From the NCBI GenBank assembly GCA_964036045.1, contig OZ038378.1, positions 52,638,001 to 52,702,000 of the forward strand: DNA of 64,000 nucleotides, written 5' to 3'. The position numbers were made by a program, and so were the translations under genes. The notes under the pieces were generated by a model, which searched no databases, was not told the origin of the DNA, and saw only the letters and a program-made list of their open reading frames with translations. This document shows positions 3,520-28,140 of this stretch, one piece after another (positions within the stretch are counted from its first letter, which is position 1; each line of letters opens with the position of its first letter). The stretch is from Eutreptiella sp. 'Long Island Sound 2002'. Its lineage: Eukaryota; Protista; Euglenida.

Positions 3520-4353
3520 TGAGGCCACACCTCCCCTTCTTGGAGAGGCCAACAAAGTGGTTGAGGCAGAGCCCAAACGGGCATTTAATAGGGATCCAAG
3601 AGATCTTGTGTTTTACACCAATGGGGATAGTTTGGGGGTGAAGAACTTGCTTGAGCACTATTTTCTGAGTCATGTGCAGCTCGAGAGTCTTTTGGAAGAC
3701 TTTGGGAAGGTTCCTCTCATAGAGAAGGCAGCCATTTTCAATGAGAACCCCCCCATTCTGGGCAGGCCCAAGCATTGAGGGGCCCGCTGCACTATTTTGT
3801 TTGTGGTGGCCGCAACCACCGCAAGCACCACCCCCATATATTTCACGATTTGCCAGTTCTCAAAAGGATCGCACATCGTGTCTATGCCATGGCGAAGAAG
3901 GGGGTGGGGGCTGGTGGTCCGGTGGAGCTGCACCATTCTGGACATGGACAAGTCGCGTGCTGTGACCACACCCCGCAGCACCTGCATCGTGATGTCCCCC
4001 GCTACACTGTGCTTGAGAGCACTTTGATTCTTCATTGTTTGATGATGCTTGCACATCATCATGAGGCCGAGGATGGCTTAGATTTTCGCTTTGTCCCTTC
4101 AAGTAGTTCCGGGCTCCCGGACCCTTGGGTGAAGAGGGCTGTAACCTTCAAAAGCGGCACTGCTTTTTTTTTCAATGCCCTTGATGTCCACCGAGGGTCG
4201 GGGATTCCAAAGGCCTCACCCACCGGTGAGGCCGATCCCCGACTCATGTCATTTTTTGCCATTCAGCTAACCCAAGCCCCTATTCTCGGGTTCCCCAACC
4301 TCCATGTCTGCGATGCCATCAAGCGGCCCACAAGGGGATGCATTAAGGCCTAG
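3520..4353 (+). pseudogene. PhyH-like 2OG-Fe(II) dioxygenase, one frameshift in a C-run near 3750
   Basis: ORF 3775-4353 has PQHLHRD (HxD), FRFVPSS, KSGTAFFFNALDVHRGSG (distal His) and PRL (Arg), the order expected for a double-stranded beta-helix 2OG oxygenase. Upstream ORF 3347-3778 (...AIFNENPP) joins it by a 1-nt shift. The 5' boundary is approximate. Confidence 0.7.
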
Positions 4354-4989
4354 GTGCCAAGGCGCCCGCGTGTCAGGGGGGGGTTAGCTGCAAGGGGAAG
4401 GTCGTAGCCAAGTGCTACGGTTGCGACCGGGTGGGTTGGTGCACGGCATACAATGATCGGCTGTGCGTGCCATGCCAAGAGGGGGAGCGCTTAGTGTGGG
4501 GGGAGGAGGAGATTTGGGGGGGAGGACCCCAATGGAGTTAGCATGGAGCAATGTACTCAATGCTTCCTCCTGGTTCGAACAACCACCGCGCATTGTTTGT
4601 TGAGGGGCTGGGTGGGAGGGTGGGGGTTGCCCGCCTCTCAACCCAGAAGGTGGAGAGGGTGGCAGGCCACCCCGACCAGTGCCCACCGGCCAAGGTGTGC
4701 CATGGGGCGGCACTGCCCTAGCGCAGCCTGCAAGAACATATTGGGAGTAAAATGCCGGGCACAATTTTTGTGCTGAGGGGGGAATGTATGGGGGATTGGC
4801 CAAGGTCCCTTCGCAGGTCGAGGGGCTGGCACGGGTGGTGGAGTGGAGTCGATCAAAGGAGCACGCGGCCGTGACACACTTCGTGTGGCTGCGGAGGATG
4901 AAGCTCATGCTCAAAGACCATAGGAAGGAGGGCAAATGCATGTGTCCATGTCAGCAATTGTGTGAATGGCGTCTGCTCTAACCGCCACT

Positions 4990-5345
4990 CTGGTTTTTTG
5001 TCAATTCCCTCCTCACCCACACGCCACAATCCTCCAACTGCCACACCTGTTCACGAAGGAGGTGGCCGAGGGAGCCGTAGCACTAGCAGCTGGAACAACA
5101 AAAGCAGCAGAAGCATGGGCCGCCACGCCGGTGGCAGCCCGTGAGGACCTGGAGGTCGAGGAGATCAAGAAGTTGGGGGAGGGGGCAGCGTGGAGGTGGG
5201 GGGAGTCGGCGGATGACGCTTGCCGGCAAGGGGGGACACAATGGTACCACCAGGGGACCATCGTGGCAAAGGAGGTGAGGTGGAGAAGAACATTAACCTC
5301 ACCCTCCCCTCCTATGTCTGGTCGCGTGGGGCGAAGCCTTTGGCC
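4990..5345 (+). repeat. Decayed coding-like segment, copy 1 (LEVEEIKKL..GAAWRWGE..DD.CRQGGTQWYHQGTIV)
   Basis: Homologous to 5760-6110 at both DNA and peptide level. Confidence 0.6.
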
Positions 5346-5759
5346 AAGTGTTTTGCCTTGTTTGTTCAATGAAGGAATGGGGTGCACAATAACTACCCGC
5401 GATAATTACGCGATGACCGAGTGGTAGCGCGATAACTACTGCTCTAACTAGTTAGAGCAAGGGGCTCTATATGTGCTCTAACTTTGCTCTAACTCAAAAG
5501 TGCACCTTGCCCCCCGAGAATCCACCCCTATGATGAGGGTACCTTGGGGAACAAGATTTGATAGGGGCTTTTTGAGGGTGCCGAATCCATTTTTTGGGGT
5601 GATTTGCCCCACAAATGAGGCTACGTGGGTGTTCTAGAAATTATGCGCTAACTAGGGGTTCCGCACCACGGTCTAGAGCAGTGCATCCCATATCGTGTTC
5701 GAACTGAGTTACGTGGAAGTTATGACGGGAGTTACTGCGTGTTTTTTTGAGTTTTTTTC

Positions 5760-6110
5760 GCAATTCTTGTCACCCACAGACCACTATCCTGCACCTGCGC
5801 ACGTGGATTCGAAGGACATGGGCGAGGCAGTCGCAGTAGCAGCACGAGAAGCAGCAAGAGCAGCAGGAGCAACAGGAGGACGGACCGCCAAGCCGGTGGC
5901 CGGCGGCGCAAAGTTGGAGGTGGAGGAGATTAAGAAGCTACTGCAGGGGGCAGCCTGGAAGTGGGGGGAGCGGTGGGATGAGGCGTACCGGTAGGGGGGT
6001 ACGGGATGGTACCACAAGGTAACCAACATGGAAAGGGGGGGGGTGGAGAGGAAGACAAACGTCATCCCCCCCCCTACGTTTGGGTGGGTGCGGGAAAGCC
6101 CTTGGCCAAT
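5760..6110 (+). repeat. Decayed coding-like segment, copy 2 (LEVEEIKKLLQGAAWKWGERWDEAYR*GGTGWYHKVT)
   Basis: Direct repeat of 4990-5345; a TAG replaces the CAA(Gln) of copy 1. Confidence 0.6.
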
Positions 6111-7799
6111 TGGCTAACAGTGCCGACGGACATGTAATTTGCTGGTTGTATGTCCCATTCATTAAGTACATGTAACTTGCTATTTTCTTTTTACAACAAT
6201 CATGGCTGATTTCCCACGTGTTAGACGTACAACGCTGGATGTACCGGGTGCCGGGTTCCGACATTCCTAAGAGTGAGAGGAAGGTGGCGAGCGTCTCCCT
6301 ACTTAATGAATGGGACATACAACCAGATAGTAAATATAATAACACTGCACAGTATGCACAAAGGTCAAGTACAATAGATTAGAGTACATTGCAAACAATT
6401 TGTACTCAAACTCTAATAGAGTCAGACACGCCACAACAATAGAAACATCACTTCACGAAGCTCCAACTACATATGCATGCAAACAGTCTAAGGCTTGTTC
6501 TACAATCCTCCTTCACGGTTGCCAATTGTGATACGTACATAATACCACGGTGGCACCACTGTACATCACGATACAAGAGCAACACAGCAGAAAGGCATAG
6601 AAAAATATATGAGCACATCACATGTAGAATAAGTCCCAATGTGTCATAGTGCTATTATGTCAAACAATACGGGCTCAAAATGGGACATTGTGAAGGTCTG
6701 GGCTGTGCAAAGCCCACCCAAGACAAAAACCCTAATCAGCACCCCTTAAGTACCAAGTATATGAATGCCAGGCTCTGCAGAGGGAGGGTTGTTGGAGAGT
6801 TCTAATATAGGCGTGATTCTGGCACTTCCATCTAGATGATGCAGTGCTTGGTGTGGCACTCGTCTTTGATCATTGCCTACCAGTGTTGTATGCAAGAGTG
6901 GTATACTTGAATCCTATTCCTGCTCACCGAATCGGGGACAATGTTTGGGCCGATTATGTTAGAGCATGTCACGTGGCCACTTGACCACTGTGTACACGAG
7001 CCAATTGTTGTAACAGGTGCGGGCAGAAAGGGAATAACTTGTAGCCTGGGCTCTACAGAGCCCGAAGTTCTGAAATGTGGAAAATTGGGGCCTAAAATGT
7101 CTTACAAAATTGGTATGGGCTTTGCGAAGCCCAACGTGATGCAGATATGCAAATTTGCTCCCCTAGTTTAGCACCTGCAAAAAACCATCTACCACCCTTT
7201 TTTTCGCTAAAACGATCAAACGATCGGGGGCACTATGGGCCTCCTAAGATATATACGCTACTTCCGAGTCCGCTTGGGGGCTTTCTCCTGCGACCCAGTG
7301 GCACACCTTGAGCCCTGCTTCTGCGTGCCATTAGAACCCTCCTCCCGGGGCCTTTTAGCGGGGACAAGCAAGGCAGCAACAAGGTACTTGTCAAGGGTCT
7401 GCTGCAATTCGTTCATAGTTTCAACCCTCCCCCCCAGGGTGATTGCCACATGGTGGCAGGTGCTGAGAGAACTGTGCATCTCAACGGTGGCCGCCTACAA
7501 ATACACCCTAATCGCACCATCACCAAACCCCCATTGTCCACCCCCTCCAACCCCTCGGGCCGGGCACGTTGAGGTTGTTGAGACATGGTGGGGTCTCGCC
7601 ACCGCGAACGGACAAGAGCAAGGGGCCAGCCTTGCTGCCGCAGCTTTGCTCTACTCAGCAGGTCTTTAGCCGGTTCCCGGTAGGCCACCCGCCACGCCGT
7701 GATGCTAGGCGCTAGAGCGATCGGGTCGAGGGCACGGGGGCTCTCTCCACGTACTGGCGATTTGGAGGTGGATAGCCCGTGTCCACCTCTGCTCAGCAA

Positions 7800-8255
7800 G
7801 CGGGAACACCGTCACCGTTCCTAGGCACTTGTGCTTCGCACCCTTTGCTCTTGTCTGTGAACCAGCGATTGGTGGGGCGGGCATGCTATGAATACCTATC
7901 CGGTGGGGACCCGCTTTGGCACACCATCTTTGCTTTGCCTGTTTTACTCTCTATCTACAAAGCGGATGGCGGGGGGGGGATCCCGTGAACACCTTTCCGG
8001 TGGGGACCCACTTTGGTACACCACCTGCGCTTTGCCCGTTTTGCTCTCTATCTACAAAGCGGATTGCGGGGTGAGCATCCCGTTATCAGCTATGCGGTGG
8101 GGACCCGCTTTGGTACACCACCTGCACTTTGCACGCTTCGCTCTTTATCAACAAGAGGGAGATGGGGTGGGCCTCCCATGAACACCTATTCGGTGGGGAC
8201 CCGCTTACGTACACCACCTGCGCATTGCGCGCTTCACTCCGCTTTGCACCACTCT
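7800..8255. repeat. Tandem repeat, ~97-bp unit, ~4-5 copies
   Basis: cggtggggacccrctttggtacaccacctgc...ctctmtatc recurs in units starting ~7890, 7987, 8083 and 8181, with a degenerate copy upstream. Confidence 0.85.
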
Positions 8256-9474
8256 AGTTGTCAGTAAGGTCCATGAATACCTGCCCTCGGCGTCCGACGA
8301 TGAAAGAAGTCGCTTGGAGATGTCATGCTCGGTGGGGGCCTCTATGCGTCCGCTCGACCACGATTCCAAGCCTAGGTTGGGTCTATCGCCGAGGTATCCC
8401 CGTTTAGCAGGGGCGTTGGTTTGGAGACTAGACCAGGCCCAATTCATCCTGCGCCCGGCATGGACGTGGCTATTAATAGTCTAGTCTGTGCACTTGCATC
8501 CCTATCCGTGTGGTGGAGACACGGGGAGTGGGAACCCTTTCCCGGCTATCCGCTGGCACGGGGCTCACGCGGATCACCGGCAGCTCGTCCTCCTGCTGCT
8601 CCTCCCCATGGTAGCTACACCTGCAATGGCGCCACCGGTGCCAGAGGTGCGATGTGCCTGATGCGGCACCCTTTCCGACTCCTCCCTCCTCTTGTCCCAA
8701 GCCTTCTCCCTCCTTTCTCATGTTGTCTCTCAGTCTTGAGATGCTCCTGCACATCCTCCCTTCCCTTCCTATCAACATCCAGTTGAGTTTCTCAAAGCTT
8801 GATTTGGGCCTGCATACGGAAAACTTCCGCCTGCTCCCACAAACTCCGCTCGGCCTGACCCTCAACGACCTTGCCCTCCTTGCCCTCCTTGCCCTTGCAC
8901 GGGGGTCGCTTCCCATAGCCACTCCCTGGACACCCTATCGTGACCGTTACTCTCAAACAAACCCCCCTCGGACGCATGGTCACCCCCTTTGAGGGTCTTC
9001 CGACCCTCGAGGAGTTTGCGGTAACGCAACACGAAGGCATCGGACGCGGCAGTCAACTACGGTGCCCCCCTCAGGGCCCGCACATCACTTCACTCCGCCT
9101 GTTTCTACGCCTGCAGTGGACCAAGCTGGTCAACATGGCACAAAATTAGGCGGTTTCTGGTGGAGGGGCGCTTCACCTGGATGAAGGGCATGGCAGCCAC
9201 CACAATTGGCTTCGGCCCCCCTCCTGGCACAACAGCCCTCTACAACTCAAGAAATGGAAAATTTTCAAAAAATTGGCTGGTAGGGGTTGAGAGATGATAG
9301 CTGGGACCGCCGAAAATGGCAAAAAATTCAGCCAAATCCGGAATTTCTCAAATATATTGTCAAACCAAGACTCGAGGACTTTAGAAATGGATTCTCCACC
9401 CTCAAAATAGTGGGGGTCCCCTCAACTCACAACACCTGAATCGCCTGCACCCCACACCGCTTGTGGGCGGTTTT

Positions 9475-10290
9475 GAGGAAAACGCCACATACGCCCCCAT
9501 TTTAGGTTTTTTTTTGGCCTACTCACGCTACCTACCCCAAGGGGTTGAATCGTTGGTTTAACCCCTCGTAAAATCGTTATTGTAGCCAAGAAAAGGGATC
9601 CCCCAATGCCTTTTTCGTATGAAAAAACTGAAGACACCCCCCCTAAGCACTTCAAACCCACTTTTTTGACGGGGGTGGGGGGGGAGGGCCAAAATATCTC
9701 AAAAATGACCCCCCCTTCTTGTCGGGTCCAAATCATTAATCTTTTCGTTTTTCTTTCAATTTTGAGCCGAAAAGGAGTGTGTGGGTCTTTGCTCCGTGGG
9801 CTTTGTATGGAGCGGATTTGGGCAGGCCCTAATGGACTTGATGTAGTTGTTAGTCGTTTTTGCTACTGGAGGGTGGAAAACACCAAATGCCACTGAACCA
9901 CTTACAAACAGCGATGTTGAGGCTTTTGGGGGGCCCACATCTCTGACTAGATGGGCCTAGTGGTCACTACGTCGGTCCCCATGGGTGTTCAAACATCATG
10001 ATGCCCAGCAAATGATCACCCCAACCCATCCTTGGGGGAAAAGAAGGGTTGTGGACATAATCAAAATTCTATTGCCTTCGGCAAGTCCACCTTGCAGAGA
10101 ATCTACCCCGAGCAACAGACACCCAAAATAGGGTAGAAACCACCTAAATACAGACTAAAATATGGTGTACACACCTTGGATGGTCATTTCAGTTGATCAC
10201 AATGTCAAAAGAAGAGTCTCGGAAACATCGATTTTGAAGCTGCCCACGGTGAAAGAGTGTATAACCAGGTTGTGTACCAATTCCCTTGGC
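9475..10290. repeat. Rearranged copy of the 51.8-55.0 kb repeat family
   Basis: 9475-9830 matches ~51850-52180 in direct orientation (aaaacgccacatac...ctaccccaaggggttgaat). 9860-10290 is the reverse complement of parts of 53400-53530 and 54740-54960 (ggtagattctctgc.aggtggacttgccgaaggcaatag). Confidence 0.8.
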
Positions 10291-10299
10291 GGACCCTAA

Positions 10300-10640
10300 A
10301 GGGGCAAGTGAGCACCATGGCCTCCACCTCCTCGTCGCACCACCTGCGACCGGTAGATCTTGGCGACCATTTGGCCTTCATCGTCCTCAAGCTCCACCAA
10401 CGTATCCTCCCGGCTGGTCACCTTCGAGTACTTGGCCTTCCCGTCTCAGTTCTCCTCAAAGGTTTCCGGCCACGGTACCTCCGAGAGTGCTCAGTCCACC
10501 TGTCCCGTTGGTGACCGCGGAGAGTTAGAGCCGCTGGACACAGCCAGCACATCCTTCAACAATTCCACGCCACTGGGGGGCACGACCGGCACGGCCTCAG
10601 TCTCCATCGCAAAGTTGATGTAGTGGATCCTCATCTGAGA
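10300..10640 (-). pseudogene. Decayed ORF of unknown function with two in-frame TGA stops
   Basis: Minus frame reads MRIHYINFAMETEAVPVVPPSGVELLKDVL...GQVD*ALSEVPWPETFEEN*DGKAKYSKVTSREDTLVELEDDEGQMVAKIYRSQVVRR in GC-rich, codon-like sequence. Confidence 0.4.
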
Positions 10641-12979
10641 AGGAAGATAGGGGGCACATGAATTGTTTATAGCTGGCACACATTTGAAAGCAAGGGGACG
10701 TGGATTAAGTCCTAACTTGGCACGTGCCAAGTCGGGGTTGGGACAAGATGGGCCACCCTGGCGCGCGCCCATTCTTGACTTCGGGGACACTATATTGAGG
10801 ATGGAGCATTTGGGGCAAGTCACGGAGCAAGGGGAAAACCTTAGGAGGCCAATAGTGCCCCCTATCGTTTTTTCGAACGAAAAAAAAAGCATGTTGTGCA
10901 CAAAGCCTAGCCTCTCTGCTGCATACTCAAGCGTAATGGAGGGGTGGTTCCCAGCCAGGGTGTATGAGAAGGAGCAGCGAAACACAATTTGGGAGTGCGA
11001 AGCAGCAAAAAGGCAGCATTTTGGGACCCCGCAGCATATGTGCGCAGCCATTGATTTTGCCCATTATGGAGGTATGAAATACGCAAAACAGAGCACCCAC
11101 GCCATAAAACTATGTTTCACAGTCTGGTGTGACAAATGGAGGTTGTTTTTGTCGCCGGCACGTGGTGCCATTGTCTTGGCAATTGCGGTATTGTGACGGT
11201 AATGACGCCCATACATCAACCGCCTGTGAAGAATGTGTACCCTAGAACAATAAGGAACAGCACCTCTATGAAAGGAGGGTGCAAAGTAGCATTTTCAAAG
11301 GCTCGGCTCTGCATAGCCCACGACCATGAAACTCATTAAAAACGAGGGTAATAATAGAGGATTCTACACCAGCATAACAATGTACAGGCAAACACGTAGT
11401 ACCGGTGCCTGAAATTGGGAATTTTTACCAGTTGGGTTCTGCAGAGCCTAGCTCAATAGAAACAACAGAAAGCACACATGAATTACGATAATGATAAACA
11501 CGCTCGACCACCAGTGTGGTACTGCATACCATAAGCGGCGCAGTGTCCAGCCCCCCCCCCCCAAAAAAATTTCAGACCCAACATAAGCCAAAGACCACCA
11601 CAGCACCAGTGATAGACAAGGCATGGCAGCTGCATACATACCAGTCGCCGAGTGTAAAGCGCAAACACATTGAGAACAAAGCACAAAAATTGTAAAAGCC
11701 TGCACGTGCGTTGTAGGAGGTCCGTCAGAAATGTGGAATTGGATGTTGTACTTACTACAGACTGATGTGCCCCCACATGTGGTGCATAAGCACCTACTAA
11801 CACCTGGAGGCAAAAAGTTTTTCCCCCCTTCTAAATCCCGAGCGAATGAGGAATTGTCAAAAGCTAGTCGACACCAACGAACACCGGTCACAAATGGCAC
11901 CAGAAAATGTATCATCACACAGTGGTCAGTGGCAAAGCAGTGTCCAACATATGCACTGTGAACCTCTGGATAAATAAAAAAAAGTTGGCCAAACAGATCA
12001 ATGAACTTGGGGCATACATGAAGGCGCGAAATGTAATTTGGCCCAGCGAATGGTGGCAAACCCATGACAAGCATACATACTGGAGATCGGACTCTGGGCA
12101 TACCTGAAAAACTCAAAATGACACACACATTCGCCTCAGCTCTGCAGGGCCTAGGCCCAGTTAACAAACCATGTCAGGAATCAATCGACGGTACATATTG
12201 CATTTGGGGTTTGTACTGCATGGGGTGTTGAAAAAATAGCACAGAAACAGAGCATTTGGGGCTCATGGACACAAACTTGGCCCCGTATTTGCACCAAAAT
12301 TGTGAACAAACTCGACAGTTCATACACTGTGTCGAGGGACGTACCAAAAGAAATGCTACAGCACAATGCTGTCTTCTTACCACCAAACTCATAGGGACTA
12401 CACCATGCTGTTGAGATGAGGGCAACATTGCAACCCTCTAGACAACATGCAAATTTCACCAACAAAGCTTGCTGGGCTCCGCAGAGCCCAGCAGTACAAC
12501 GTTCCTCATATTTTGGCGCCAATCACTCAAATCCGGAAGGATGGGCTCTGCAGGACCTAGCTCAGTGCAAACTGAAAAAATGATATTCAAATTCAGTCAC
12601 AAACACGTACAGTGACAAACAAGACACAATATCCATTGTCCCACAGCTGTTTGGGACTGCACAGGACATGCCCAGTCACATCAGGCCCTCCCAACTCCAG
12701 CACAGTTACGCAATTTGTGGTACTGGTGGTATGTCCGTTATGGTCCGGCGACAGTCATGACCCAGCGATATGTAGGGCTTTTTCTCCTTCTCCTTCTCCT
12801 CCTTTTTACATTGCCGCTCCCGTGCCTCCTCTTGGTTCCGCAACTCGCGCTCAGCCTTCTCCTGCTCCTTCTGTCGGGGTTAATCGGTCTTCCCCTTTGG
12901 TTTCGGAGTTTGCGGATCCGGTACCTCCTCGTTTTCTGACTCACTAGTGTTCGCGTCAGCTGCCTGGTTAGGGGACTCG

Positions 12980-13935
12980 TGCTACTGGAACAGCGTCTGG
13001 CCTGTGCTTGCCCGGTGCATGACACTCCGCCACTCAACATCCTCGTCCGTCTCCCCTTTCCGGACGCTTGTCTTCAGCATGTTCACCACATCAGCTGCAT
13101 TGTAGGGACCATTAGATAATAAACCCCATGCGAAGTTCAACAAGATAGGCAAGTGAATACAGCCCGAACTGATCCAGTCGGGGCGGCGGCCGTAGTATAG
13201 TGCCCACAGGCAGCGCGATGCATCAATATCCATGTGCGTGTCGTCCGTGTCGTCATTGCGGTCCTCCAACAAATTCACGAACCACAACCGGACCGCCAAA
13301 CCTAACCAGAGACCTGGAGTGAACGACTTTTGTGTGAGGAAGTGCGGCACGGCAGGGCCTAGACCATGGGTCTTCACAAGCAAAAAAGTTGACTGCTCCA
13401 ACAAATCAGGCTCTTCTCTGCGTCCTAGATGGCAGACAGCCATGCACAAAGCTGTTGGGTATAAATCTTCCAATTGCGAACGCAAGTGTTGTTCCGCGGC
13501 GATCAAATCCCCATGGTGTGCATCAGAGGCGCCAAGTACCCCTTGAGACAGTATCCGCACTAGGAATCCACCCTCCTCGCCAGGGGACTTCAACAATGAC
13601 GAGACTATACCTCAGCATTTTGATCTCATTGGGCAGTGCGGGCACGGATCGATCGTACGCCTAAATTTCTTCAAATTATGATCCCTTGCCGACAATGACC
13701 TTTGCCACATCGCCACCATACACCTCAATAGCCGGTTTCAACACTGGTCTCACAAGGACTCTGCGATGTGCTTCGACATTTTCTCGATCGCTAACGCATA
13801 GACGTGCCTTCAACAACGCCTAGAGCGGTGGCCACAGCGTAGACTCGCTGTACTCCCAGCTCCCTTGCCATGCACCAAAATTCGGGAGACGGTGATTACA
13901 ATTCTTCAAGATGCGACCCACCTCAGTCTTAGTAC
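12980..13935 (-). pseudogene. Decayed DNA amino-(N6A/N4C)-methyltransferase-like exon
   Basis: After a CAG acceptor (13937-13936) a long frame with scattered stops reads GTKTEVGRILKNC...KMLRYSLVIVEVPWRGGW (DPPW-like motif IV). Shifted frames downstream give FTPGLW, SGCGS and MDIDASRC, resembling the FxGxG SAM-binding region in beta-class order. Confidence 0.42.
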
Positions 13936-14029
13936 CTGTGTGCACAGGAGCCACAGACGAGAGCACGTTGCAATGATTCTAGCGATTCACCAATTAAAAG
14001 CGATGTGGCACAAAGTAAATTTGCATTTC

Positions 14030-15300
14030 TTGGGATTGTGGGCTCTGCTGAGCCGAGCACTCTCAAATTCTTAATATGACAGCTGAAATTGGTCAATGCG
14101 CTTGCCCTAGGCCTTGCACAGCCCAACATCGCCAAAAGGGTGAATTGGGGGTTGTCTGGGCGGGGGGCGGGGTCCTCGGACATCATCAAGCAAGGTTGCA
14201 CCGGTTAACTGCAGTGAAGTTGGGGAAGTTCCAACAAGCACAGCGTCTCTGTAGATCCGGTCGATCGGCATCCTCTGGGATCCTGGGGTCTGCAGAGCCT
14301 AGTACTCTCAAATTGGTAATATGTTGGCCGAAATTAATCAACGTGCCTGCTCTGGGCTATTCAAAGCCCGGCATGGCCAAAATGATGAATTGGGGGCTGT
14401 CTGGGGGAAGGGGGGGGGGCGTCCTCGGACATCATCACACAAGGTCGCACTACTCAACAACCGTGTAGTTGGGGAAGTTGCAACAGGCACAACATCTCTT
14501 TAGATCCAGTCAATGTGCATCCCATGGGATCCTGGGCTCTGCAGAGCCCAAAACTCTCAAATTGGTAATATGACGGCTCAAATTGGTCGATCTGCTTGCT
14601 GTGTGGTCTGCAGAGCCCAGCATGGCCAAAATGGTGAATTGTGGGGTTGTCTTGGGGGGGGGGGGGGTCCTCGGACATCATCAAGCAAGGTTGCACCGTC
14701 AACTGTAATGAAGTTGGGGAAATTCCAACAGGCACAGCTCCTCTGTAGATCCAGTCAATTGGCATCCTATGGGATCCGGGCCTTTGCAGAGCCCAGTACT
14801 CTCAAATTGGTAATATGACGGCTAAAATTGGTCAATGTGCGTGCTCTGCGCTCTGCAGAGACAAGCATGACCAAAATGGTGAATTAGGGGGCTGTCTAGG
14901 GGTGGGGGGGGCGTCCTCGGACATCATCAGGCCAGCTTGCACCAGTCAACAACAGTGAAGTTGCGGAAGTTCCAACAAGCACAGCTCCTGTGTAGATCCA
15001 GTCAGTTGGCATCCTGCGGGACCCTGGGCTCTGCAGAGCCTAGTGCTCTCCAATTGGTAACGTGACGGCTGAAATTGGTCATTGTGGAGGATCCAGAGCC
15101 CAGCACGGAAAATATGGTGAATTATGGGGTGTCTTGGCGGCGGGCGGGGGGGTTCTTTAAAAATCATCAGGCAAGATTGCACAAGGCAACATTAGTGAAG
15201 TTGCTGAAGTTCGAACAAGCAAAGCGTCTCTCCAGATCTAGTCCATCTGCATCCCATGGGATCTACGGCTCTCCAGAGCCCAGCAAACTCAAACTGCTTG
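14030..15300. repeat. Tandem array, ~246-bp unit, ~5.2 copies, two GGGCTCTGCAGAGCCC-like palindromes per unit
   Basis: Units start ~14030, 14276, 14525, 14770, 15017 and 15257, sharing tgggatcctgggctctgcagagccc, ctctcaaattggtaatatgac and gtcctcggacatcatc. Related monomers occur at ~6700-7170, 11435, 12140-12560, 17110-17200 and 21620. Confidence 0.92.
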
Positions 15301-15325
15301 GTGTCACATTAAAATCGGACATTAC

Positions 15326-16546
15326 GCTTGATCTACGCTCCTGTTGCAGCGGCGCAATGAATCCGATGTCTCACAACGACAGGCAGGGGGGTTTACAAGG
15401 CAACATGATACGTCTTGAAGGGTGGATGCGCTCAACCGGCATGTCGGGGTGACCAAAATGATACCACCAAAATTCCGCAGCGCGCAGCTTCTTTGCCAGC
15501 TTCTGGAAGCCCGATATTGTAACTTCGGCGAGGCCATGTAATTGCATACAGGCCACAAATTTTCGGGTTGCGTTCCAGCGGAGCATCGCATTGTATAAAG
15601 GGCAATCATCCGCTTGTGTTCCACCATCTTGCCGAGTGCGTCCGTGAAGGTGGTACCACACGCCAGGGTCATATGGGCAGCTGGCGTCATTCGCTTGAGG
15701 ATTGTCTTCGTGTTCCCGGATTTCGCAGTCAGCCCTGCCTCCTCAATTGCCTCACACATCAAGGTAACAAATGTCTTCTTACATTGTCTGTCCTCGGCCG
15801 CCATTTGTAGGAAATTGTTCAACAGTTGGGGTACACTGCTCTCACGTCCACTTTGTTGCGCCCTATTTTGTTGTCCCGCCCGCTTTCACCTGATCTTAAC
15901 GGATGTATCAAACTTAATGATGCGCACGTCAAAGTTGGTCATCCAACTCTCGACCTCGCCCATCCTTGCTGTCACATCCTTGCAAGTTTCATCACACGCC
16001 GCCATGCCGTGCCGGGCTCCAGTCACCCACAGGGCTCCCAATGAATACAGGAGCATGGCACATCACACAGAGCAAGCCAAGTAGCCGGTTACGTTGATTG
16101 AATTAGGACGCGACATTCCCATACCTTTGTCGTTTCCAGACCGGAAGCTGCAGTCGGCCATTAGGGGGGTTTGCAAGTAGATCCTCCTTCACCCCTACCA
16201 CGTGGTTCCAATCGATGAGCCTGTATTTTCCATACTCCATGCACCTGTCAATCTTCAATTTCTTGCGCGGCAGCTGCGTTCTGCTTACCTCCACGTAGTT
16301 TTGAATGGCCACTACGCTTGTGGAGTCCTTGATGCTATCCATGTTCCTTGCGACACGGCCCTTGTTCGCAACTTGCCAGGGGGATTGACTAGCCTGGCTG
16401 GCCCCAACAACAGTGCTGCCCTGTACAGCTTCCGCTACGGAGGCCTGTGGCTGCAGTGCATCCACCTTCTTGGTTTCCAGTGTGTCCATCGGTGGTGCCT
16501 CACCATCGTTGCGATCCATGGCAATGTCGTTGCGTATGTCACACAT
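15326..16546 (-). pseudogene. Decayed ParB/Srx-like N-terminal domain protein
   Basis: Frames read KYRLIDWNHVVGVKEDLLANPP..RLQLPVW, then after a shift LWVTGARHGMAAC (GxxH..AA motif), WMTNFDVRIIKFDT and AGQQNRAQQSG, continuing into ORF 15322-15822. Several stops and frameshifts. Confidence 0.48.
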
Positions 16547-17413
16547 GTCTCAGAAAGACACGGACTTTACAGGACAAATTTGGTCAGTAAAAAAAGCACG
16601 ACAAGCACACAGCTCACACCATCAATGATGGCAAATGGCACATTTGGACATCAAATTCGTCGGAACAAAGCATTCAATTCGGCACCCAAAGGGGTTGAAA
16701 CAGGCAAAATTGTCTTCAAAACAGGTTATCACCGCAAAGGCGTCTCAAATACAATGTCCACGGCACGCTGATGGTCACAGCATCAAACAGGCGCACCAAA
16801 GCGTCGCTCATTGACAGAGGTGTAGAGCAAGAGTAAAATTGGGCGTGTCCAAATGGCCTGCAACACCGGAGCCAAACTTTCTTGTGGCATTTTACCTTCA
16901 CACGTCGTAACAGCGTATCAGTGCAGTAGTGGCAGGCACATCTCTTCGAGGGTCATACACGCTGACGCAGCGGGTGCACACTGCAATACAAAAGCATGAA
17001 GATGTGTGCAGAGATCAAAGCATGGTGATGGCATGGTGCAAGATTGGTCTAGCCTTAGGAAAGTTACAGAAAATGACCAGATGGGGGTACATATCGGGTA
17101 ATGGTGACACGCTGGGCTCTGCAGGGCCCACAGTAACAAGAACCAGTAATACAACCCCTCAAAACTGCGTGTCGGTCAAAACTGGGCTCTCCGAACCCCA
17201 GACATTTGGGGGACAGCAATGATGGGGTTGTACGCATTAAAATGCTGATTGGGCTGTCTGGGGGGCGGGTCTACATTGCCACCCCCCTCGTGATCAGTCT
17301 GAATCTATCAAGTTGAATTCACGCACTCCTCACTGAGCACAACACATACAGTGCCATCAAAGGGGGCGTCAACATCTGCAGCATCCCTGGCCCGGATCAC
17401 AGGTACACCATCC

Positions 17414-18109
17414 TCAGGGGGGGGCACCCACATGATAAATGAACATTGCATTTGGTGCTGTGGGACCAATGTGCTGCATTGCAATTGGCATGACCCCAAT
17501 TGTTTCTACAGCTGACCGGGCCTCGCGGAGGTTCACAGTTGGCCTAAGTGGGATATGTTGCCGTATGTCATCCATGGCATCATCGCGGAACCCTTGTCCA
17601 CCTACCAGGGTGCACAAAAAGCGCTTTAGAATAGATTTCATAAACACAAAAGTTTGCGTACCACCGGTTCCCTTTCTGGGGAACACGTACGTTGTGTCCC
17701 TTTCTGCCTCAACGACACTGATTGGACCCGAGGACCATCGCACACTGGGATGCTCCTAACGTCCTACACCACGCATGGGTTCAACACCACCTCTACACAC
17801 ACACTTTTGGAGAGAGTCTCCGTTGCACGTCGCTGCTGATGGGGGGGGGCACGGTGCGGAAAGGGTCACGAGCCTCACCCGATGTGTGCTTGTCGGGGTG
17901 CTGCTTGCACCGTGCCCGCAATTTTGCGAGCAGGGCCTCACAGCATTGCTCCACATGGGCGGCACCGGGCGTGTCGTCGTGCCATTGCGTATGGTATAGA
18001 AATGCGCAGCATATGGTGCGGACACAGTCCATTTTCGTTGCAGCTGGACCGCGAAGGTCAACAAGTAGACCTGAACAACTTTGAAGTACACACGTGGCTA
18101 CTATACCCA
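17414..18109 (-). pseudogene. 3' half of a decayed DDE-type transposase-like gene
   Basis: Continues the 20304-21541 frame exactly once the insertion and one TSD copy are removed: ADGLGI|VATCVLQSCSGLLVDLRG...YHTQWHDDTPGAAHVEQCCEALL (candidate catalytic E). Confidence 0.6.
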
Positions 18110-19223
18110 GTTTTCCGTTGATGTACAAGGATCTCCCCGGGCTCCAAGTGCTAGTGCACTCTATACCGAGTTTTCCACTCTTGCGGATCTTGTCGAAGTT
18201 GTGCTACTTCCCGATGGTTTGGCACGGACGGCCACCTCACCCAATGAAGCCCAAGCATGCCGAATTTGGACAGTTACGGTTAGGGCCAAAATTTTGCTAG
18301 ACACAGTTGCCAAGGGCACACTTGGCCGTTGTACTGTTCAGGACATCCGTCGGAAGCTTACTGAGGATTGTGCAGTTATTACTCCAATGCTACAATCTGC
18401 ACATATCATCGCCACTCCTGCTGATGTGCATGAAGTGTTGCGCACCCTCGGCGTAGTGCAAATGCAACCAGTTGCGCCACCTACATTGCAAGCACCCATG
18501 CCCCCAAGTACTTGTTCGGATTCTTGTGCGCAAATAGTGCGGCCTGGCAACAATTTGCAAGAATACCAAAAGGCTTACAATGCTTCTACTGGTGACCATT
18601 GGTTTTGCTTGTGCGGGAAAAAGTTGTCCAGATCAGTGCGGCCAAGCAGTAGCACTTTTGAGCAACATTGCAAAACGAGCCAGCAACACTTGCGCTTCAT
18701 GCAAGAGAATCGCCCCCTTCAACCACGGGAACGCACATTGTTGACTTTTTTCCCGGCAAAACGGTCGAGTGGGAATCCCAGCCCGCAATCGACTCCTACC
18801 ATGCCTACGGCGACAAGCAACCCAATTCCCGAGCAATCCGTTGTGCCTGCAGAATTGCCACTCCCACCCCCACCATGTCCGAAAGTGCTGCCATTTGGAA
18901 TCAGAGATGCAAACCATTTACGCCGGGCATATCCACTACTACGCCACGGACATGAGAAGGCCTCATGGCGTCTAGTTGATGGCTTGGGCTTGGAATCGGT
19001 AGACCCGCCGTGTACAGGCGAAGGATCCTATGATTCCACGGGGTGCATTGTACCATGTTCCGCATGTGCTGGTGTGAGGGGTAGTGTGGTGCTGCATCAG
19101 TGGATGGTTGAGGCTAGAGAGCCAGACAAAGGTGTACAAGGTGTGAACCGGCTTTGGATCTCCATTGTGGGAACCGGCTTGGATGTCCATTGTGTGAACC
19201 GGCTTTGGATCTCCATTGTGTGA
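18110..19223 (+). CDS. 5'-truncated transposon ORF with a C2H2-like zinc finger and a second Cys cluster
   Basis: Open for ~370 codons; contains WFCLCGKKLS...STFEQHCKTSQQHL and a later PCTG...PCSAC; runs into the minisatellite at 19141. Confidence 0.55.
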
Positions 19224-19498
19224 ACCGGCTTTGGATCTCCATTGTGTGAACCGGCTTGGATCACCATTGTGGGAACCGGCTTTGGATCTCCATTGTGTGA
19301 ACCGGCTTTGGATCTCCATTGTGTGAACCGGCTTTGGATCTCCATTGTGTGAACCAGCTTGGATCTCCATTGTGTGAACCAGCTTTGGATCTCCATTGTG
19401 TGAACCGGCTTTGGATCTCCATTGTGTGAACCAGCTTGGATCTCCAATGTGTGAGCCGGCTTGGATCTCCATTGTGTGGCCCGGCTTGGATCTCCAAG
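19141..19498. repeat. Minisatellite, 25-26-bp unit x14 (gtgtgaaccggct(t)tggatctccatt)
   Basis: Fourteen contiguous, near-identical units counted directly. Confidence 0.97.
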
Positions 19499-20303
19499 GC
19501 AAGTAATTGTGGGGCAGGTGCCATACCTTGGCACCACGGCTGTGACGTGTCCATGGTTTGATGGTATGAAGTGAAACGGCCGGGTGGAAAGTTGGGCGTC
19601 GTGGGGTCCACAACGGACATGGGGCACCCGTTGAACGGCCAGGACGAGCCATCGAAACCACGCGGGGTCCATCACCTAGCACTGCAAGGTAATGGACACG
19701 TACACAGTGGCAAGGAAACCGGAACGGCCGGGTGGGAAGATTGACGTCGTGGGGTCCACAGTAGACTTGGAGCACCTACTGAACGGCCATGACGGGCGAT
19801 TGTACCCACGCGGGGTCCACCGGTTGCTTGCCCGGGTTCTCGCCCCATGCAGTGTGCATGGGGACTCTTACCGCCGACAAGAGGCCAGGGTGGGGCGCTA
19901 CGACACGATGCGTAGCCGGGAGTACTCGGGGGCCTTGGTGCCCTTAAACATAAATACCACCCGTGTCGGCGATGCATGTTGTTTGCTGGTTCATGACATT
20001 GTGCTGCGAAGCATGCCATGGAGAAGGGGCCACCGACGACTACATGTCGCAAATGCATGTTGGACATGGGCTAGTACCCCAAAGAGCCAAGCAGAGGAAT
20101 GCCAACGAGTAGCAAAGGCATGTTATGTGGTGGGAACACTGTGATTATGTGTGGTAGGTGCGACATGGGAAGAAAAAGTTTTTTCTGTAGGACCCACTTT
20201 TTTTCGTACCCCCCCCCCCCCCCTAGAGGGGGTCACCCCCGAAAAAAAATATCCCACCCGGTATCAAAAATTTTTTTCTTCCCCCCCCCCCTGACTATAC
20301 CCA

Positions 20304-21541
20304 ACCCGTCGGCGCGCCGAGCCCAAGTGCAATGACGTACCAAGTGTCCCAATACAAAGATGGCTGGGAGGTAATAATTCAGGAGGGATTCCTAGCCCCG
20401 AAGGATGCGCAACCCATCCTGTGTGCTTAGGGCTGCTTGGTCGGCACGTCCCTCAAACGGGGTAATTTTGTGCCAAATGTGTGCCCGCATGTCTTCTCAG
20501 GCTGCGAGAAGGAGCGCCGCGATAGTTTTCTCTGTGACAACCATTTTGGGGTGGTTACATATGCGCACATCGGCCCCAAACACGGGAGCGGTGATTTACC
20601 AAAACAAAGGAAAGAAGTTACGCCAGATGATATTGCAAACATGTTTGTAGGGCTGCCACACACCATAAATTAACGAGATACAACGCAACCAATCCGGATA
20701 ATTCCAGTCAATGGTTGCTCCAGAGTACAAAACCTGGAGCACCCGGTATTGGATGTTGCAGTCAACGAAATGCTATCGGGTTCTGACAATGCCGTTGGGT
20801 ACCGCGTAGCATATCGAGCAGATCCTAGAGCTCTTGGCTCTGACTTGTACGGGACTCATATATGCCAAATGGCTTCCAAAAGAGTTGCTATCTACCACCC
20901 TCCCCGGCAATATCGAGGGGGGCACGGATGGTCCTCCGAGAAATTGGTGCATTGCACATATCAGTGCACACCTTCAACATTTCTCTGTTATGGTACACAG
21001 CTGCCATGGCCTCTGTGTCTACCTAGTCCACTAGGTCATGCAAACTCAGATGACCAAGAAAAAGGCAAAGGGGGGTTGTGTGCAACACCGCCATTGCGGC
21101 GACATCTAGACAGACATTGGGTTTCGCTGAATCGGCCCGAAATTGGGCATGCCACCAGTTGTCCACCCGCACCACAATATCACGCCTAACAATGCTACGC
21201 CATAGTTTGCGGAACTGCAATGCCCTGTGGTCTGCAATAGACAACTGGGATGGCTTGGTGAGGTCAAGCGTCTTGCGCAACCGCTTGTTAACACGTCGAT
21301 CCGCATAGAATCGTATGAATTCCTCGGCCACACCATGGCGCACAGCCGATAATATCATTTGGCGACCAATGCACCATTCGTTCTTACAAAGAGATTGCAT
21401 GTAGCTGACATGCAACGCCATAGGAACCGGTGCCATAGTGCAAAGACAGTCTGGGTGGCACAACAAGAAAAGGCGGTAACTAGAGAAGAGGACTAGCAAT
21501 AGGTGTGGACATACCGTACATAGTGGAAGCTGATTTAACAC
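20304..21541 (-). pseudogene. 5' half of a decayed DDE-type transposase-like gene
   Basis: Motifs in order: IVVRVDNWW..FRAD (first D), FVDCNIQYRVL (second D), LIYGVWQPYKHVCN (GxW/FH-like), YLPAIFVLGHLVRHC. Several TAG/TGA stops and frameshifts. Confidence 0.55.
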
Positions 21542-22240
21542 GTGAGGTAACGCAAGTTAGGGCTTGAATTGCGGACAGTGTGCACAGAAGACATCAAATT
21601 AGATTGTTCCAAAAGGCCAAGCTGTGCAGAGCCTAGCATCGGGAAATTGGTAATGGCGGGTAGTGTAATAGACAGAGGGGACATAGGGAGCCACGAGCCA
21701 CGAGCAAGTAACTAAGAAGGGGTAACAGTAGCATTTGGCGCAGGCAGGGCGCTGTAGAGCCGAGAGACCCCAAAAGTGATAATTATGGGGTGCATAACAC
21801 ACATATGGGAACTAGGCCAAACACTTAATGGATCACATAGTTTTCCATATTTGGCTGATGGCACATCACGTAGTAATGACCACCGTGACCGATAGTGACC
21901 ATCTCGCTTTACCGGGACAGTAGATGGTTGTGGGGACACAGATTGAGCGACGGCCGGCGACAATGCTACATGCACATGTGGCAACAGTGAGTATCGCGGG
22001 GTCTGGTGCTTGTCCGCAGTAGCGGAAGTGGGCAATAGGCAAATGCGCTTGGGGAGGGGGGTGCAGGAGGGAAGCCCTTGGGGGTATCGCATTATCAAGC
22101 AGGGGCACCGGGGCACTAATGGAACGCCTACCACTGGAGGTAATTGAAGTGCGACTCAAGGCAGAGGGGGTGCTTCTATGTGGGAGGGTGGCCGCTATGT
22201 AGGAGTGTAAGGTGCAATACTCATGAACAACGACCATTGC

Positions 22241-24729: not shown

Positions 24730-26745
24730 ACAAATTCCTACAAAATTGGTATGAATTTCGTACCAATTTCGCACGAATTCGCCCCACTTTCCACTGTTTC
24801 GCTCTCCTACAACTCTCACAGCCTTTCTTTGACAATGTCTCAAACTCTTTCCCATCTTACGTCCCTGCAATCCCATCCCGATGCTGCTGCTGACAGCCTG
24901 GCGCGGTATCAAGCCCTGCCAGTTGCCCATCACCATATGGAGGAGGCGACCTACCAGCCCAGCGCCCTCACAATGGACGATGTAGTGGCCTGGGCAGCAT
25001 CCCTGGTGCTACCTCGGAGGTAACTCACATTGATTTGTGCAGCCCCTCGCGCAAGTCTTATCTTGGGGGGAAGGCCTGGTCCACAAATTTGTGGAGGGAA
25101 CTCCGCTTCCGGGTTCCCTGCGTTCGTTTTTTTTACCCCCTACCCCAACCTTCCACCATGGACCAGTTGTTGAATGCCATGCGTACTAACCCGGTGGGGA
25201 AGCCCAAGGACGCCCACGTCCACGTGTACCCCAGCACTAACCTGGTGTATACCCCCCACCTGCATTGCGACATGGTGTGCCTTCAAGATCTTGCTACAGG
25301 GGCACCACTTGACGATTCTTTTGTTCCCTTCACTTGGCACCTTTAGGTGGTGGGAGGATTTGGGCTTGGCCCCTTTCCAACCCACCATCCAACCAAAGGT
25401 TGGGATGTCGGAGATCACCCACCCCACTTTCTACAGCACCACTTCTTTGCAATGGTTCCGGGGGTCCTCATGTGACCCTTGCTTCATTTCAAGTGAACCC
25501 CCCCAGCTGCTGTTCAACGCCGGGGTGAGTGAGGAGCAGTCAAGGGATTGTGAAATCCCCCGGCGTTCGCAAAGCAAAAGCTCGCTGGGGTAGGGGGTGG
25601 GGTGGGGGGCCTTTTCAAGAAGTCCCACCCCCCAAATCGTGGAAAGTGTCTTTGAGGTCGGGAAGCTGCACCCAATGACGCCGGGCATCATCGTTGTCGC
25701 AAGTATTGGGAGTGGGGCCTAGCTCCTCCACAATGAAGTTGCCACAGGTCCTAAGGTGCTTCCCCCTTACGACAGGAACATCTCGGGTTGTCACCGGAGT
25801 AGTTTCCTCTGCCTTTCGGAGGAGTACCAGGTGCAGGTGCAGACGGGGACGGCCCTGGGGGAGGCGGTGGAGGTTCGCTAGGATACCATTCACCTGCACA
25901 TGGGGGACATGCTGCTGATGGTGGCCACCAACCGCCACCGTGGGATGCCTGCCCTCCCGGGCGCCAAGGATGCGCTGCAGGGGGCCGGTTTTAACTTGTG
26001 GACCCCCGACGCCAAGCACCGTCACCAGCAGCCCAACACCACCCACCTGGACCCCACCCCCCCTCCTCGAGGCCCTGGGCGTCGCTGGGTGTTTGTCTAG
26101 CTGGGACTGCCCAAGCGTGGACCAGGTGTTGTGGGTGGGGAAGGGGGCGGTTGGGAGGGTGGGGTTGTGGGAGAGAGGGATGCTGCCCAGGCCCCCTTCG
26201 CCGACGCCCCCAAGGCGGTCCCGGCCGGCCCCCCCACCTGCCACTATCACCCCACCTTTCTCTCCCGCTCCGCCCCGGCCACCGACCTTGCCGTGATGGT
26301 GGCCGCGAAGCACTCGGTGCTCTTTTTGTGGGGCCCGTACACCAGATCGAGATCACCAAGGGGGACAACGTGGATGCGGAGTCGGAGATGCACTTCGCCA
26401 TCTCCGGCGTTACGCCCCCGCTGCGGCCGACCATGTTGTGGCGCCTGGGCAACACTGCCCTAGCGTGGCGGCCCCCCAAGTGCACGAAAGCTGAGGCGTG
26501 CTAAATCACCTGTCCGTGTGATTGCAAGGTGTGCCCCCTGTGCATTCGTGTGTGTTTGCTTGCTGTGTTGACAAATTGGACGAAATTCACACGACATTAG
26601 TACTAATTTCGTACGAACAAACGTCTGGGCAGGTGCACATGTGTGCAAATGTGTGCATATAGAAGTTTTTGTGAAATTGGTTTGAAATTCGTATGAAGTC
26701 CGTACAAAGAGGTGCGAATTTTGTCTAATTTGTGTACCGTTTGCG
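24730..26745. mobile_element. Putative non-autonomous unit bracketed by inverted gaaatt/gtacgaa motif clusters, carrying a second 2OG-Fe(II) dioxygenase relic
   Basis: The reverse complement of 24737-24775 (gtgcgaaattggtacgaaattcatacc...) matches 26671-26700 (gtgaaattggtttgaaattcgtatg). Confidence 0.45.
25620..26504 (+). pseudogene. PhyH-like 2OG-Fe(II) dioxygenase relic with a downstream extension
   Basis: A single frame from 25621 reads QIVESVFEVGKLHPMTPGIIVVASIGSGA*LLHNEV...CLSEEYQVQVQTG...R*DTIHLHMGDMLLMVATNRHRGMP...GAGFNLWTP, giving (Q)xLHxE, GDMLL and HRG motifs. Both stops are TAG, where CAG and TGG would fit. Confidence 0.62.
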
Positions 26746-26749
26746 TTCC

Positions 26750-28140
26750 GTTCAGGTGCAGGAGACCGGTGAGGAGAGCGAGCGGGGCAAGGGATCCGGC
26801 GTTGGACAGGCCCCAAGCGCAGCCTGAAGTGAACGGAGCGAGGGGTCCGCGCGCTCAGGACGCAATGCCGGGGGTCGAAGTGAGGCAAGCTCGGGTGCGG
26901 GGCGTGGGCAAGGGGCCGGATGGGAGGTGATGATCCCCATGCCGGCGCGTGAGGACTTGGGCACCGCCCACCTGGACCACCCCCTTGGCCCGGGTCACCC
27001 TGGCCGGCAGGCCGCCGGAGCATGGTTGGTAGCACAGGGTGGTGCCCGGGCCCGACGGGCGGTAGCGGCATCTTTCTGCCGTATGGGAGGTGACCGTGAG
27101 GGCCCGAGGGGTGCACGCGGACCTCCGCATCCGCTTCCCCTGCCACCTTGTGATCTGGGGGGGGTTCCAACCTGCCCGGGGCAGGAGCCGGTGGGCATTT
27201 TTGCCTACCGGCTGGTGAGCGGGCACTAGAAGGTGCAAACGGGGGTGGCGGGGATTCGGGAGCATGGGACGGTGACCACGGCCGGCATCATTGCGCCGGC
27301 CGCGGTTAGGAGTGGTTGGAGGTGGCATGGCTTGCCATGCGCGTCCATGTGGGGAGGATGCGGGGTCAAGGGGGGGGGGTGACGTCATTGACGTTGAGGG
27401 ACAGGAGGACGCCCCCTCTGCCCCCCGCGCCAGGAAGCGGAAAGCCCCCGCCCAGCAGACGCAGGTCTGTCCGCCTCCAAGGCCCCGCGTACAGCGGAGC
27501 GAGCGGCACGTGAGCGGACGAGAGGGGGTGTGGCTGAATGGGTGCAGGAGCAGCAGAAACACAAGACGCGGTGGGTCCGCGCGATGAGCGCGGAGACCGT
27601 GCAGCGCGACGTGGAGGCGCCAGTTGCTAAGGCGAACGAAGATAAGCGGGCTGCGGAGGTGGAGCGTGACGCTCTACGCCGGGACAAGGAGCGCCTCACT
27701 GCCAAGGTGAAGACCTTGGAGCGGGAGGCGGCACAGCGGGCGAGGGCCACGGGTGGCATGGCACCCGGACCGGCGGCAGAGGGGAAGGCCGAGGGCCCGA
27801 CGGCCGAGAGGGGGGGGGGAGGCCTGTCGGCCGTCGAGGGGCGCCCAACGCCGCCGGCAGTCGGTTCCTCTTGGCCGGAGCGCGAGCATGGCATGCACAG
27901 GCAAAGACGGCGGCTGGACAGATGTCGGCCGTCGCCAGGGGCTTGCGCATGGCCATGCTTCACAGCCAAGCGCAGGTCCGGGTCGCGACGGTGGCACCCG
28001 ACCTGGCCAAGGTCACTACTGCCCACGACCAGCTAGCGCAGCAGTAACCCCCCCCCGCCGCCGCCTCACGGCGGCGGCGATGGAGGCCGCCTTTGCGGCG
28101 GCCGAGGAGCAGAGCTCCCAGGGCTCCGCTGGCCAGAAAT
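26750..28140 (+). pseudogene. GC-rich decayed ORF(s) with a coiled-coil segment
   Basis: 27530-28036 has VQRDVEAPVAKANEDKRAAEVERDALRRDKERLTAKVKTLEREA. Neighbouring frames are broken at G/C runs. Confidence 0.3.

Follow-up and report, generated by a model that had tools for sequence, protein, structure and literature searches.

A TIR transposon family of a euglenid with a DDE transposase, a probable ParB/sulfiredoxin-like partner gene and dispersed palindromes

A transposon family defined by its ends

Within a 64,000-nucleotide stretch of the genome of the euglenid Eutreptiella sp. 'Long Island Sound 2002' (assembly GCA_964036045.1, contig OZ038378.1, positions 52,638,001 to 52,702,000; the whole of this stretch is called the window here, and positions are given in its own numbering), a decayed, 5'-truncated copy of a transposon of 11-12 kb with terminal inverted repeats (TIRs) lies on the minus strand at 10840..22183. 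Along that strand it carries the relics of three genes, namely ORF1 (20295..21541 and 17414..18107), ORF2 (15326..16546) and ORF3 (12779..13935), together with non-coding spacers in which one palindrome recurs. The copy corresponds to positions ~1690-11825 of the full copy L040:7442-19265, and more than 20 genomic copies align with it colinearly, with identities of 75-88%. In a comparison of window and genome, the segment 11430-17400 found dozens of colinear copies in the host genome, with 75-85% identity.

The 3' boundary of homology is sharp. A junction alignment across 15 copies places the 3' TIR, with the end ...GGCCTCCTAAG, at 10840..10871 on the minus strand, and unique flanking sequence starts at 10839, just past it. 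The other limit of the homology is 22183, where the 5' TIR is missing; as other copies extend ~1.7 kb past the equivalent of this position, the window copy has lost that much of its 5' end, and 840 bp found upstream in other copies is absent from the window. Three complete copies (L040, L041 and L048), taken from another, independent assembly of this organism in ENA, measure 11.2-12.0 kb. Each is bounded by perfect 32-bp TIRs that start CTTAGGAGGCCC, the first bases being CTTAGG, and each is flanked by a 5-bp target-site duplication (TSD), the three reading AGAAG, ATGTA and TATAG. When the 2.28-Gb assembly was scanned with a 28-mer from the TIR, 594 matches were found at three or fewer mismatches, compared with 0 in the control, and these often face each other as pairs with 10.3-11.8 kb between them. 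From 594 ends it follows that the family has ~300 or more copies. With its TIRs, a TSD of fixed length and a transposase of RNase H fold (see below), the element is a class II cut-and-paste TIR/DDE transposon. An earlier note on this DNA had proposed a single multi-gene mobile element at 11430-21850; such an element is indeed present, although its limits were misplaced, the real copy running from 22183 to 10840 with the loss of ~1.7 kb at its 5' end.

When copies were compared, the third codon positions of ORF1, ORF2 and ORF3 showed a ~1.6-fold excess of mismatches, which was not found in the non-coding parts of the copies. All three were therefore genes under selection during the spread of the family, and the three minus-strand gene relics lie where the earlier note had located them. 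A 344-aa frame further upstream ('ORF0') is without this codon-position signal and was not counted as a gene. Pfam returned zero matches for any ORF of the element, whether from the window or among the long ORFs of other copies. The window copy itself is a dead relic: its genes are all broken, and it is without likely function.

Part of this damage is due to a nested, high-copy repeat of 2.2 kb (18108..20294) that splits ORF1. Other copies of the element run continuous across the insertion point, with an overlap of 7-10 bp, and copies of the repeat elsewhere are 91-99% identical; the element that it entered is much older. The repeat holds a 26-bp tandem array at 19141-19496, and elsewhere its halves (~1.15 kb and ~1.03 kb) often flank a variable number of tandem units. 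The window also contains a second copy of this family, a more diverged one, as a separate 5'-terminal fragment at 6300..7248 on the minus strand, which matches element positions 2-969 at 72% identity and retains an intact 5' TIR at 7248-7217. Close to this fragment, 6127-6254 is a small piece in inverted orientation that corresponds to element positions 929-1055, and a 97-bp tandem repeat (3.7 copies, 81% identity) occupies window positions 7870-8228, between both transposon fragments.

The transposase, its partner and a third gene

Intact ORF1 has ~700 aa. In the window its N-terminal part (20295..21541, minus strand) likely starts near 21436 and differs from other copies by a 177-bp in-frame deletion at ~21260; both L036 and the distant homologue P0015 have retained the 59 residues so removed. 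The C-terminal part (17414..18107, minus strand) matches the C-terminus of P0002. The idea that this gap and a similar one in the tail of ORF3, each of ~180 bp, represent lost introns was rejected; both are deletions of coding sequence. A word search identified an intact homologue of 701 aa from a metagenome with 35% identity, and a profile search of 1.84 billion representatives returned 1,179 relatives at E <=0.001, 220 of them at E <=1e-30. ORF1 belongs to this large environmental family (1,179 clusters), for which there is no Pfam model: none matches ORF1 or any of 48 relatives, no THAP, Tnp_P_element or hATC domain was detected in them, and phmmer and profile searches of the PDB with host ORF1 sequences found nothing.

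An AlphaFold2 (AF2) model of ORF1, with the 48 relatives as alignment, reached a pLDDT of 84 and a pTM of 0.82, and every one of its top 43 structural matches is a DDE transposase. The best are the P element (Z 9.9, 276 residues aligned), Hermes (9.1), Transib (7.8), ISCth4 (7.5) and RAG1 (7.2). Invariant across the 48 relatives are D109, D243, W278-H279 and E448/449/452, and the catalytic Glu is presumably one among the last three. The model thus identifies ORF1 as a DDE transposase whose core resembles RNase H and carries a helical insertion domain. The DDE transposase relic claimed for 21541-17414 is borne out in its fold by the model and its structural matches, except that 18108-20294 belongs to the nested repeat.

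Like the P element, Hermes and Transib/RAG1, ORF1 is predicted to have a DDE core of the RNase H type that is interrupted, ahead of the catalytic Glu, by a large helical insertion, and it has the aromatic-His motif after the second Asp that is seen in P, hAT and Transib/RAG1 transposases. Identity to P, hAT and Transib in the structural alignments is, by contrast, ~10% or less. Moreover, the TSD is 5 bp, not the 7-8 bp of P or the 8 bp of hAT, and no Pfam domain of either is present. Transib also has a TSD of 5 bp, but the TIR of the euglenid element is not CACWRTG-like, nor is its sequence, CTTAGGAGG..., like a recombination signal sequence of the RAG1/Transib type. Sola elements, of which Sola1-1_Ec32 is discussed below, differ in a TSD of 4 bp. 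EnSpm/CACTA-Plavaka elements, finally, have CACTA ends and a 3-bp TSD, neither of which is found here, and there is no Transposase_21/Plavaka match in Pfam. As ORF1 and its element lack what defines the P, hAT and EnSpm superfamilies, ORF1 was assigned to no superfamily.

ORF2 (15326..16546, minus strand) has an intact form of ~370 aa and contains an 84-nt GT-AG intron at 16124-16041. Among 32 copies of this intron, GT is kept in 27, AG in 25 and a stop upon read-through in 29. An in-frame TGA common to the ORF2 copies was considered as a product of CpG decay, an explanation rejected because the TGA lies inside the real intron. In the window copy the 3' splice site has AT in place of AG, the exon contains a frameshift and the GGQH motif has become GARH. 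Spliced ORF2 was searched exon by exon. A hidden Markov model (HMM) of host ORF2 matched three colinear pieces downstream of ORF1 in the distant relative L045 (E 3e-5, 4e-3 and 0.1 among 292 ORFs), and the L045 homologue has an intron at the identical codon and phase. An intact homologue of 394 aa adjoins ORF1 in L044, and a further piece of one is found near ORF1 in L046. Among the neighbouring ORFs on the contigs of distant relatives, Pfam recognized none. ORF2 homologues hence sit by the transposase in relatives of only 25-35% identity, which argues that ORF2 is a core component, the conserved partner gene of the transposase, and not cargo, as had been suggested. In L045, from a sediment metagenome, the corresponding intron (L045:3670-3846) has 177 nt compared with 84 nt in the host, and it encloses a complete palindrome pair, as though a dyad module had been inserted.

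The core of ORF2 is probably ParB/sulfiredoxin (Srx)-like. With a profile of three ORF2 lineages (A5), sulfiredoxin accounts for the six top PDB matches at E 0.06-0.12, and the next unrelated match appears only at E 1.1. The alignment spans 56 columns, from the helix before the PxxVxW strand through (S/G)GQH, which falls opposite the FGGCHR of Srx. For the L044 protein alone, sulfiredoxin again came first, at E 0.14 with noise at similar scores, and a protein atlas, with scores of 0.77-0.79 for ORF2 and ORF3, gave ParB_N at rank 15 for ORF2, a weak lead. In the three lineages the motif reads IGGQHG, ISGQHV and LSGQHF, with the His kept. We favour the ParB/Srx-like reading; the match, though marginal, is to the very family that had been predicted beforehand. 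Several results weigh against it and against the role proposed for ORF2 below. The sulfiredoxin match is, as said, marginal; searches of Pfam, NCBIfam and PADLOC with ORF2 stayed without a match at E <=10; a genome scan with PF02195 hit 10 places, none an element copy; the motif in all three lineages is without the nucleotide-binding Arg of GxxR/GGCHR; and an AF2 model of ORF2 (P0018, from a shallow alignment) was unusable at a pLDDT of 42. With host ORF2 sequences alone, phmmer and profile searches of the PDB were blank, as was tblastn against phages. The ParB/Srx-like label that the gene had received from the earlier note is weakly supported by the A5 profile at E 0.06, whereas Pfam, NCBIfam, PADLOC and the PF02195 scan speak against it.

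ORF3 (12779..13935, minus strand) has lost ~185 bp of its tail at ~12778 in the window. The intact form has 455 aa, a globular portion of ~335 aa and then a Lys/Glu-rich tail. Compared by hhalign with the ORF that comes after the ORF2 homologue in L045, it gave E 0.006 over 132 columns, so that ORF3 may also be ancestral. It is a third gene, probably also conserved across lineages, and it may even be part of the ORF2 gene. The segment 13935-12980 had been called methyltransferase-like, a label that no test supports: none of the methyltransferase models of Pfam, NCBIfam and PADLOC matched ORF3, and neither sequence nor profile searches linked it to a PDB chain; whole-genome scans with PF01555 and PF05063 hit 16 and 7 places, respectively, none an element copy; and by eye neither the (D/N/S)PP(Y/F/W) of motif IV nor the FxGxG of motif I could be found in it. 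An NPPD does occur in ORF2, where it falls within the Srx-like alignment. The sole outside lead for ORF3, a weak 3'-5' exonuclease look-alike in the protein atlas (score 0.77), was dropped, as a genome scan with PF01612 hit no copy and the ExoI and ExoII motifs are absent.

Elsewhere in the assembly, a small contig contains, at G000:C339:37334-38590, a 552-aa open frame that matches both ParB_N (E 8e-6) and N6_N4_Mtase (E 5e-20). It is a genuine ParB-methylase fusion unrelated to the element, possibly of bacterial, phage or viral origin.

The palindromes and what may bind them

The palindrome of the family, GGGCTCTGCAGAGCCC, forms the core of a 20-bp dyad. Fifteen copies with three or fewer mismatches are found at 11304..21762, all in non-coding spacers. 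Across the window, 13 sites occur at two or fewer mismatches (0.04 expected) and 18 at three or fewer (0.32 expected), and all 18 lie either within 11304-21762 or in the second fragment, 6300-7248, where three of them lie, at 6700, 7048 and 7117. Pairs with a distance of 69 bp recur (12474/12543, 14285/14354, 14534/14603 and 14779/14848), and the sites are arranged as modules of ~110 bp, each made up of dyad, spacer and dyad; in the fetched copies, with 545 sites in all, neighbouring sites are 69-70 bp apart in 172 cases. Directly downstream of ORF2, starting within ~40 codons of its end, a tandem array of 5.1 units of 245 bp extends over 14031..15283. Each unit contains two palindromes 69 bp apart, and the number of units differs among copies. 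The earlier note had described one palindrome family in and around the relics, which the 18 sites confirm, with the refinement that its 14031-15283 part is this tandem array.

The palindrome goes with the element throughout the genome, as had been anticipated. In the complete copy L040, 25 palindromes are found inside the element and none in ~10 kb of flanking sequence. They occupy every spacer between genes, and the regions closest to the ends lie ~110-560 bp from the 5' end and ~480-610 bp from the 3' end. The exact 18-mer palindrome occurs 1,838 times in the genome, and about 45 of 50 among the matches listed lie in TIR-bounded elements; it is almost confined to the element family.

In five distant relatives the same genes are surrounded by palindromes as well, but of a sequence peculiar to each relative. 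L045 has 11 copies of TTCGCTCCATGGAGCGAA, L044 has 21 of TTCGTAACNGTTACGAA and L039 has 4-6 of CTGGTCGCGATCGCGNCCAG, with a chance expectation of zero in all three cases; a script scan found 6 copies of CCGCGAANNTTCGCGG in L046 and 2 of TACGAACCCAGTTCGTA in L047. Palindromes are paired 67-69 bp apart in L045 and L039, and palindrome arrays adjoin the ORF2 homologues in L044 and L045. The sequence of the site thus varies by lineage while its form and spacing persist, which points to a recognition protein encoded by the element. The L044 contig also contains telomere-type CCCTAA repeats in its interior (L044:1402-1443).

On balance, we lean towards the palindromes being cognate sites for a protein that the element encodes, with ORF2 as the most likely candidate. 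According to this proposal, ORF1 would cut at the 32-bp TIRs and insert the element with a 5-bp target duplication. ORF2, with a centre that resembles the N-domain of ParB and sulfiredoxin and is followed by a helical region, would most probably be the dimeric DNA-binding protein for which the dyads serve as cognate sites. Bound to them, it would tag the element and control it or take part in assembling its ends, in the manner of the second protein of two-component transposons (TnpA of En/Spm, the Myb-like protein of Harbinger) or of KorB. The data show the structure and copy number of the element, the fold of its transposase, the conservation of ORF2 and palindromes specific to each family; the ParB/Srx fold, the binding of the dyads and the purpose of that binding are what we infer. 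To the weaknesses of the ORF2 match given above, further counterpoints must be added. Conservation of the palindromes is only slightly better than that of their flanks, 0.90 versus 0.85, and the palindromes are without CpG, which could explain this difference. The contigs of L039 and L047 are too short to reveal whether ORF2 is present. Moreover, the ORF1 transposase could equally read the dyads.

This last alternative, in which ORF1 itself binds the dyads, subterminal as well as internal ones, to recognize the element ends and to regulate itself while ORF2 is otherwise employed, we consider unlikely, although a number of observations agree with it. ORF1 is the sole protein seen in all six palindrome-carrying lineages, and in L044 and L047 palindrome arrays lie immediately up- and downstream of its gene. 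The transposases of P, Ac and En/Spm elements have sites near the element ends, which the dyads near both ends of L040 resemble. Most dyads are, however, internal, present in each interval between two genes, and the largest array adjoins ORF2 rather than the ends. ORF2 was found wherever the contig of a relative is long enough, and no DNA-binding domain was identified in the N-terminus of ORF1.

Less likely still, the dyad modules would work by structure without a dedicated protein, as hairpins, cruciforms or through RNA pairing, and act as transcript-end, processing or intron-like signals, spreading as small units. That lineages differ in sequence and keep palindromic character and 67-70 bp pairing would fit such a role, as would the presence of dyad modules on the flanks of every ORF and of one dyad pair in the L045 intron, which exceeds its host counterpart by 93 nt. 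Nonconventional introns of Euglena depend on paired ends, according to one report (PMC12501133). Structure alone would not demand, however, that one exact palindrome be kept at 10-25 sites within a family, nor that the 18-mer be nearly restricted to the element. Very improbable, finally, is the earlier proposal that ORF2 and ORF3 form a ParB-guided N6-adenine methyltransferase module with which the element marks its own DNA in or close to the palindromes. Giant algal transposons with ParB-like and DNA-methylase accessory proteins exist (PMC12477816; bioRxiv 10.1101/2025.02.11.637652), and ORF3 comes after ORF2, with possible conservation in L045, but self-marking by adenine methylation loses its support together with the methyltransferase identity of ORF3, which the model searches, the genome scans and the missing motifs leave unsupported.

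Three further observations concern the remainder of the window and the host genome. At 34337-34402 (minus strand), 66 nt match eukaryotic large-subunit (LSU) rRNA with 50.2 bits, a score equal to the Rfam gathering threshold; the match could be a stray rRNA fragment or chance. A 2-kb block at 26001-28000 has 66% G+C, compared with ~50% elsewhere in the window. A 24-mer that we take to be the spliced-leader sequence of Euglena gracilis occurs 5,458 times in the genome versus 0 in the control, on both strands and dispersed along chromosome 1.

Known systems and meaning of the finding

The arrangement of a putative binding protein and many dispersed sites recalls several known systems. In bacteria, ParB acts on parS, and KorB is a ParB-family regulator with dispersed OB operators on plasmid RK2. 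As in these systems, a palindrome of 16-20 bp is present in many copies, some in tandem and some intergenic or in promoter positions, and the partner protein is predicted to have a ParB/Srx-type N-domain followed by a helical region. Unlike in parABS, there is no ParA partner (no Pfam match for any ORF of the element), the Arg of GxxR is missing, the setting is a eukaryotic transposon and the sites are candidates only. Two-component TIR transposons are represented by En/Spm, with TnpA and TnpD, and by PIF/Harbinger, with a transposase and a Myb-like protein. Like them, the euglenid element joins to its transposase a second protein that is conserved, and repeats short motifs, frequently in the form of inverted dimers, which in the present case are candidate sites; it differs in that its second protein is unrelated in sequence and its sites extend beyond the subterminal regions.

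Algal transposons with ParB-like genes and inverted-repeat arrays have already been reported in 2025. Giant Plavaka (EnSpm) transposons of red algae carry a PAG cassette, in which PAG3 combines a ParB-like N-terminus, of weak similarity (HHpred E 0.29), with a 2OG oxygenase and has tandem inverted-repeat arrays adjacent to it (bioRxiv 10.1101/2025.02.11.637652). Like those, the euglenid element is a multi-gene TIR transposon of more than 10 kb with an accessory protein of weak ParB similarity, in this case E 0.06 to sulfiredoxin, and a tandem inverted-repeat array directly beside its gene, and in both cases the protein is proposed to bind the element that encodes it. In contrast to PAG3, no 2OG-oxygenase (Pfam and PDB searches of ORF2 and ORF3), methylase or SET domain was detected; and in contrast to the PAG elements, the palindromes run through all spacers as pairs 69-70 bp apart, and the host is a euglenid. 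In Ectocarpus, the large DNA transposon Sola1-1_Ec32 encodes a ParB-like accessory protein of 1104 aa with an N4C/N6A DNA-methyltransferase domain, which is proposed to bind and modify its own sequence (PMC12477816); the euglenid element likewise has a ParB-like accessory gene but no detectable methyltransferase domain. From the elements in the reports of 2025 the euglenid family differs in its transposase, in the lack of any detected modifying domain and in a ParB/Srx-like gene that is a conserved core partner.

The window thus leads to one multi-copy transposon family that is defined by its ends, its TSD, three genes and one intron, in a genome of ~2.3 Gb whose repeats are poorly described. 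Comparison of lineages adds to the algal reports of 2025 that the ParB/Srx-like gene and palindromes travel with the transposase over deep divergence, that the palindrome varies in sequence but not in its paired spacing, and that a DNA-modifying domain is not needed for this. If ORF2 does bind the palindromes, the element would offer a tractable eukaryotic analogue of site recognition of the ParB/KorB type. More tentatively, the family may belong to a widespread and as yet unnamed superfamily of protist transposons, characterized by a ParB/Srx-derived protein and a fast-evolving palindrome in a two-dyad geometry of ~68-70 bp. Were this so, a bacterial-type protein and self-recognition through dispersed operators would have become the core of a eukaryotic transposon, and not captured cargo, and the ParB/Srx-derived protein and its sites would serve to regulate, bridge or shield the element.

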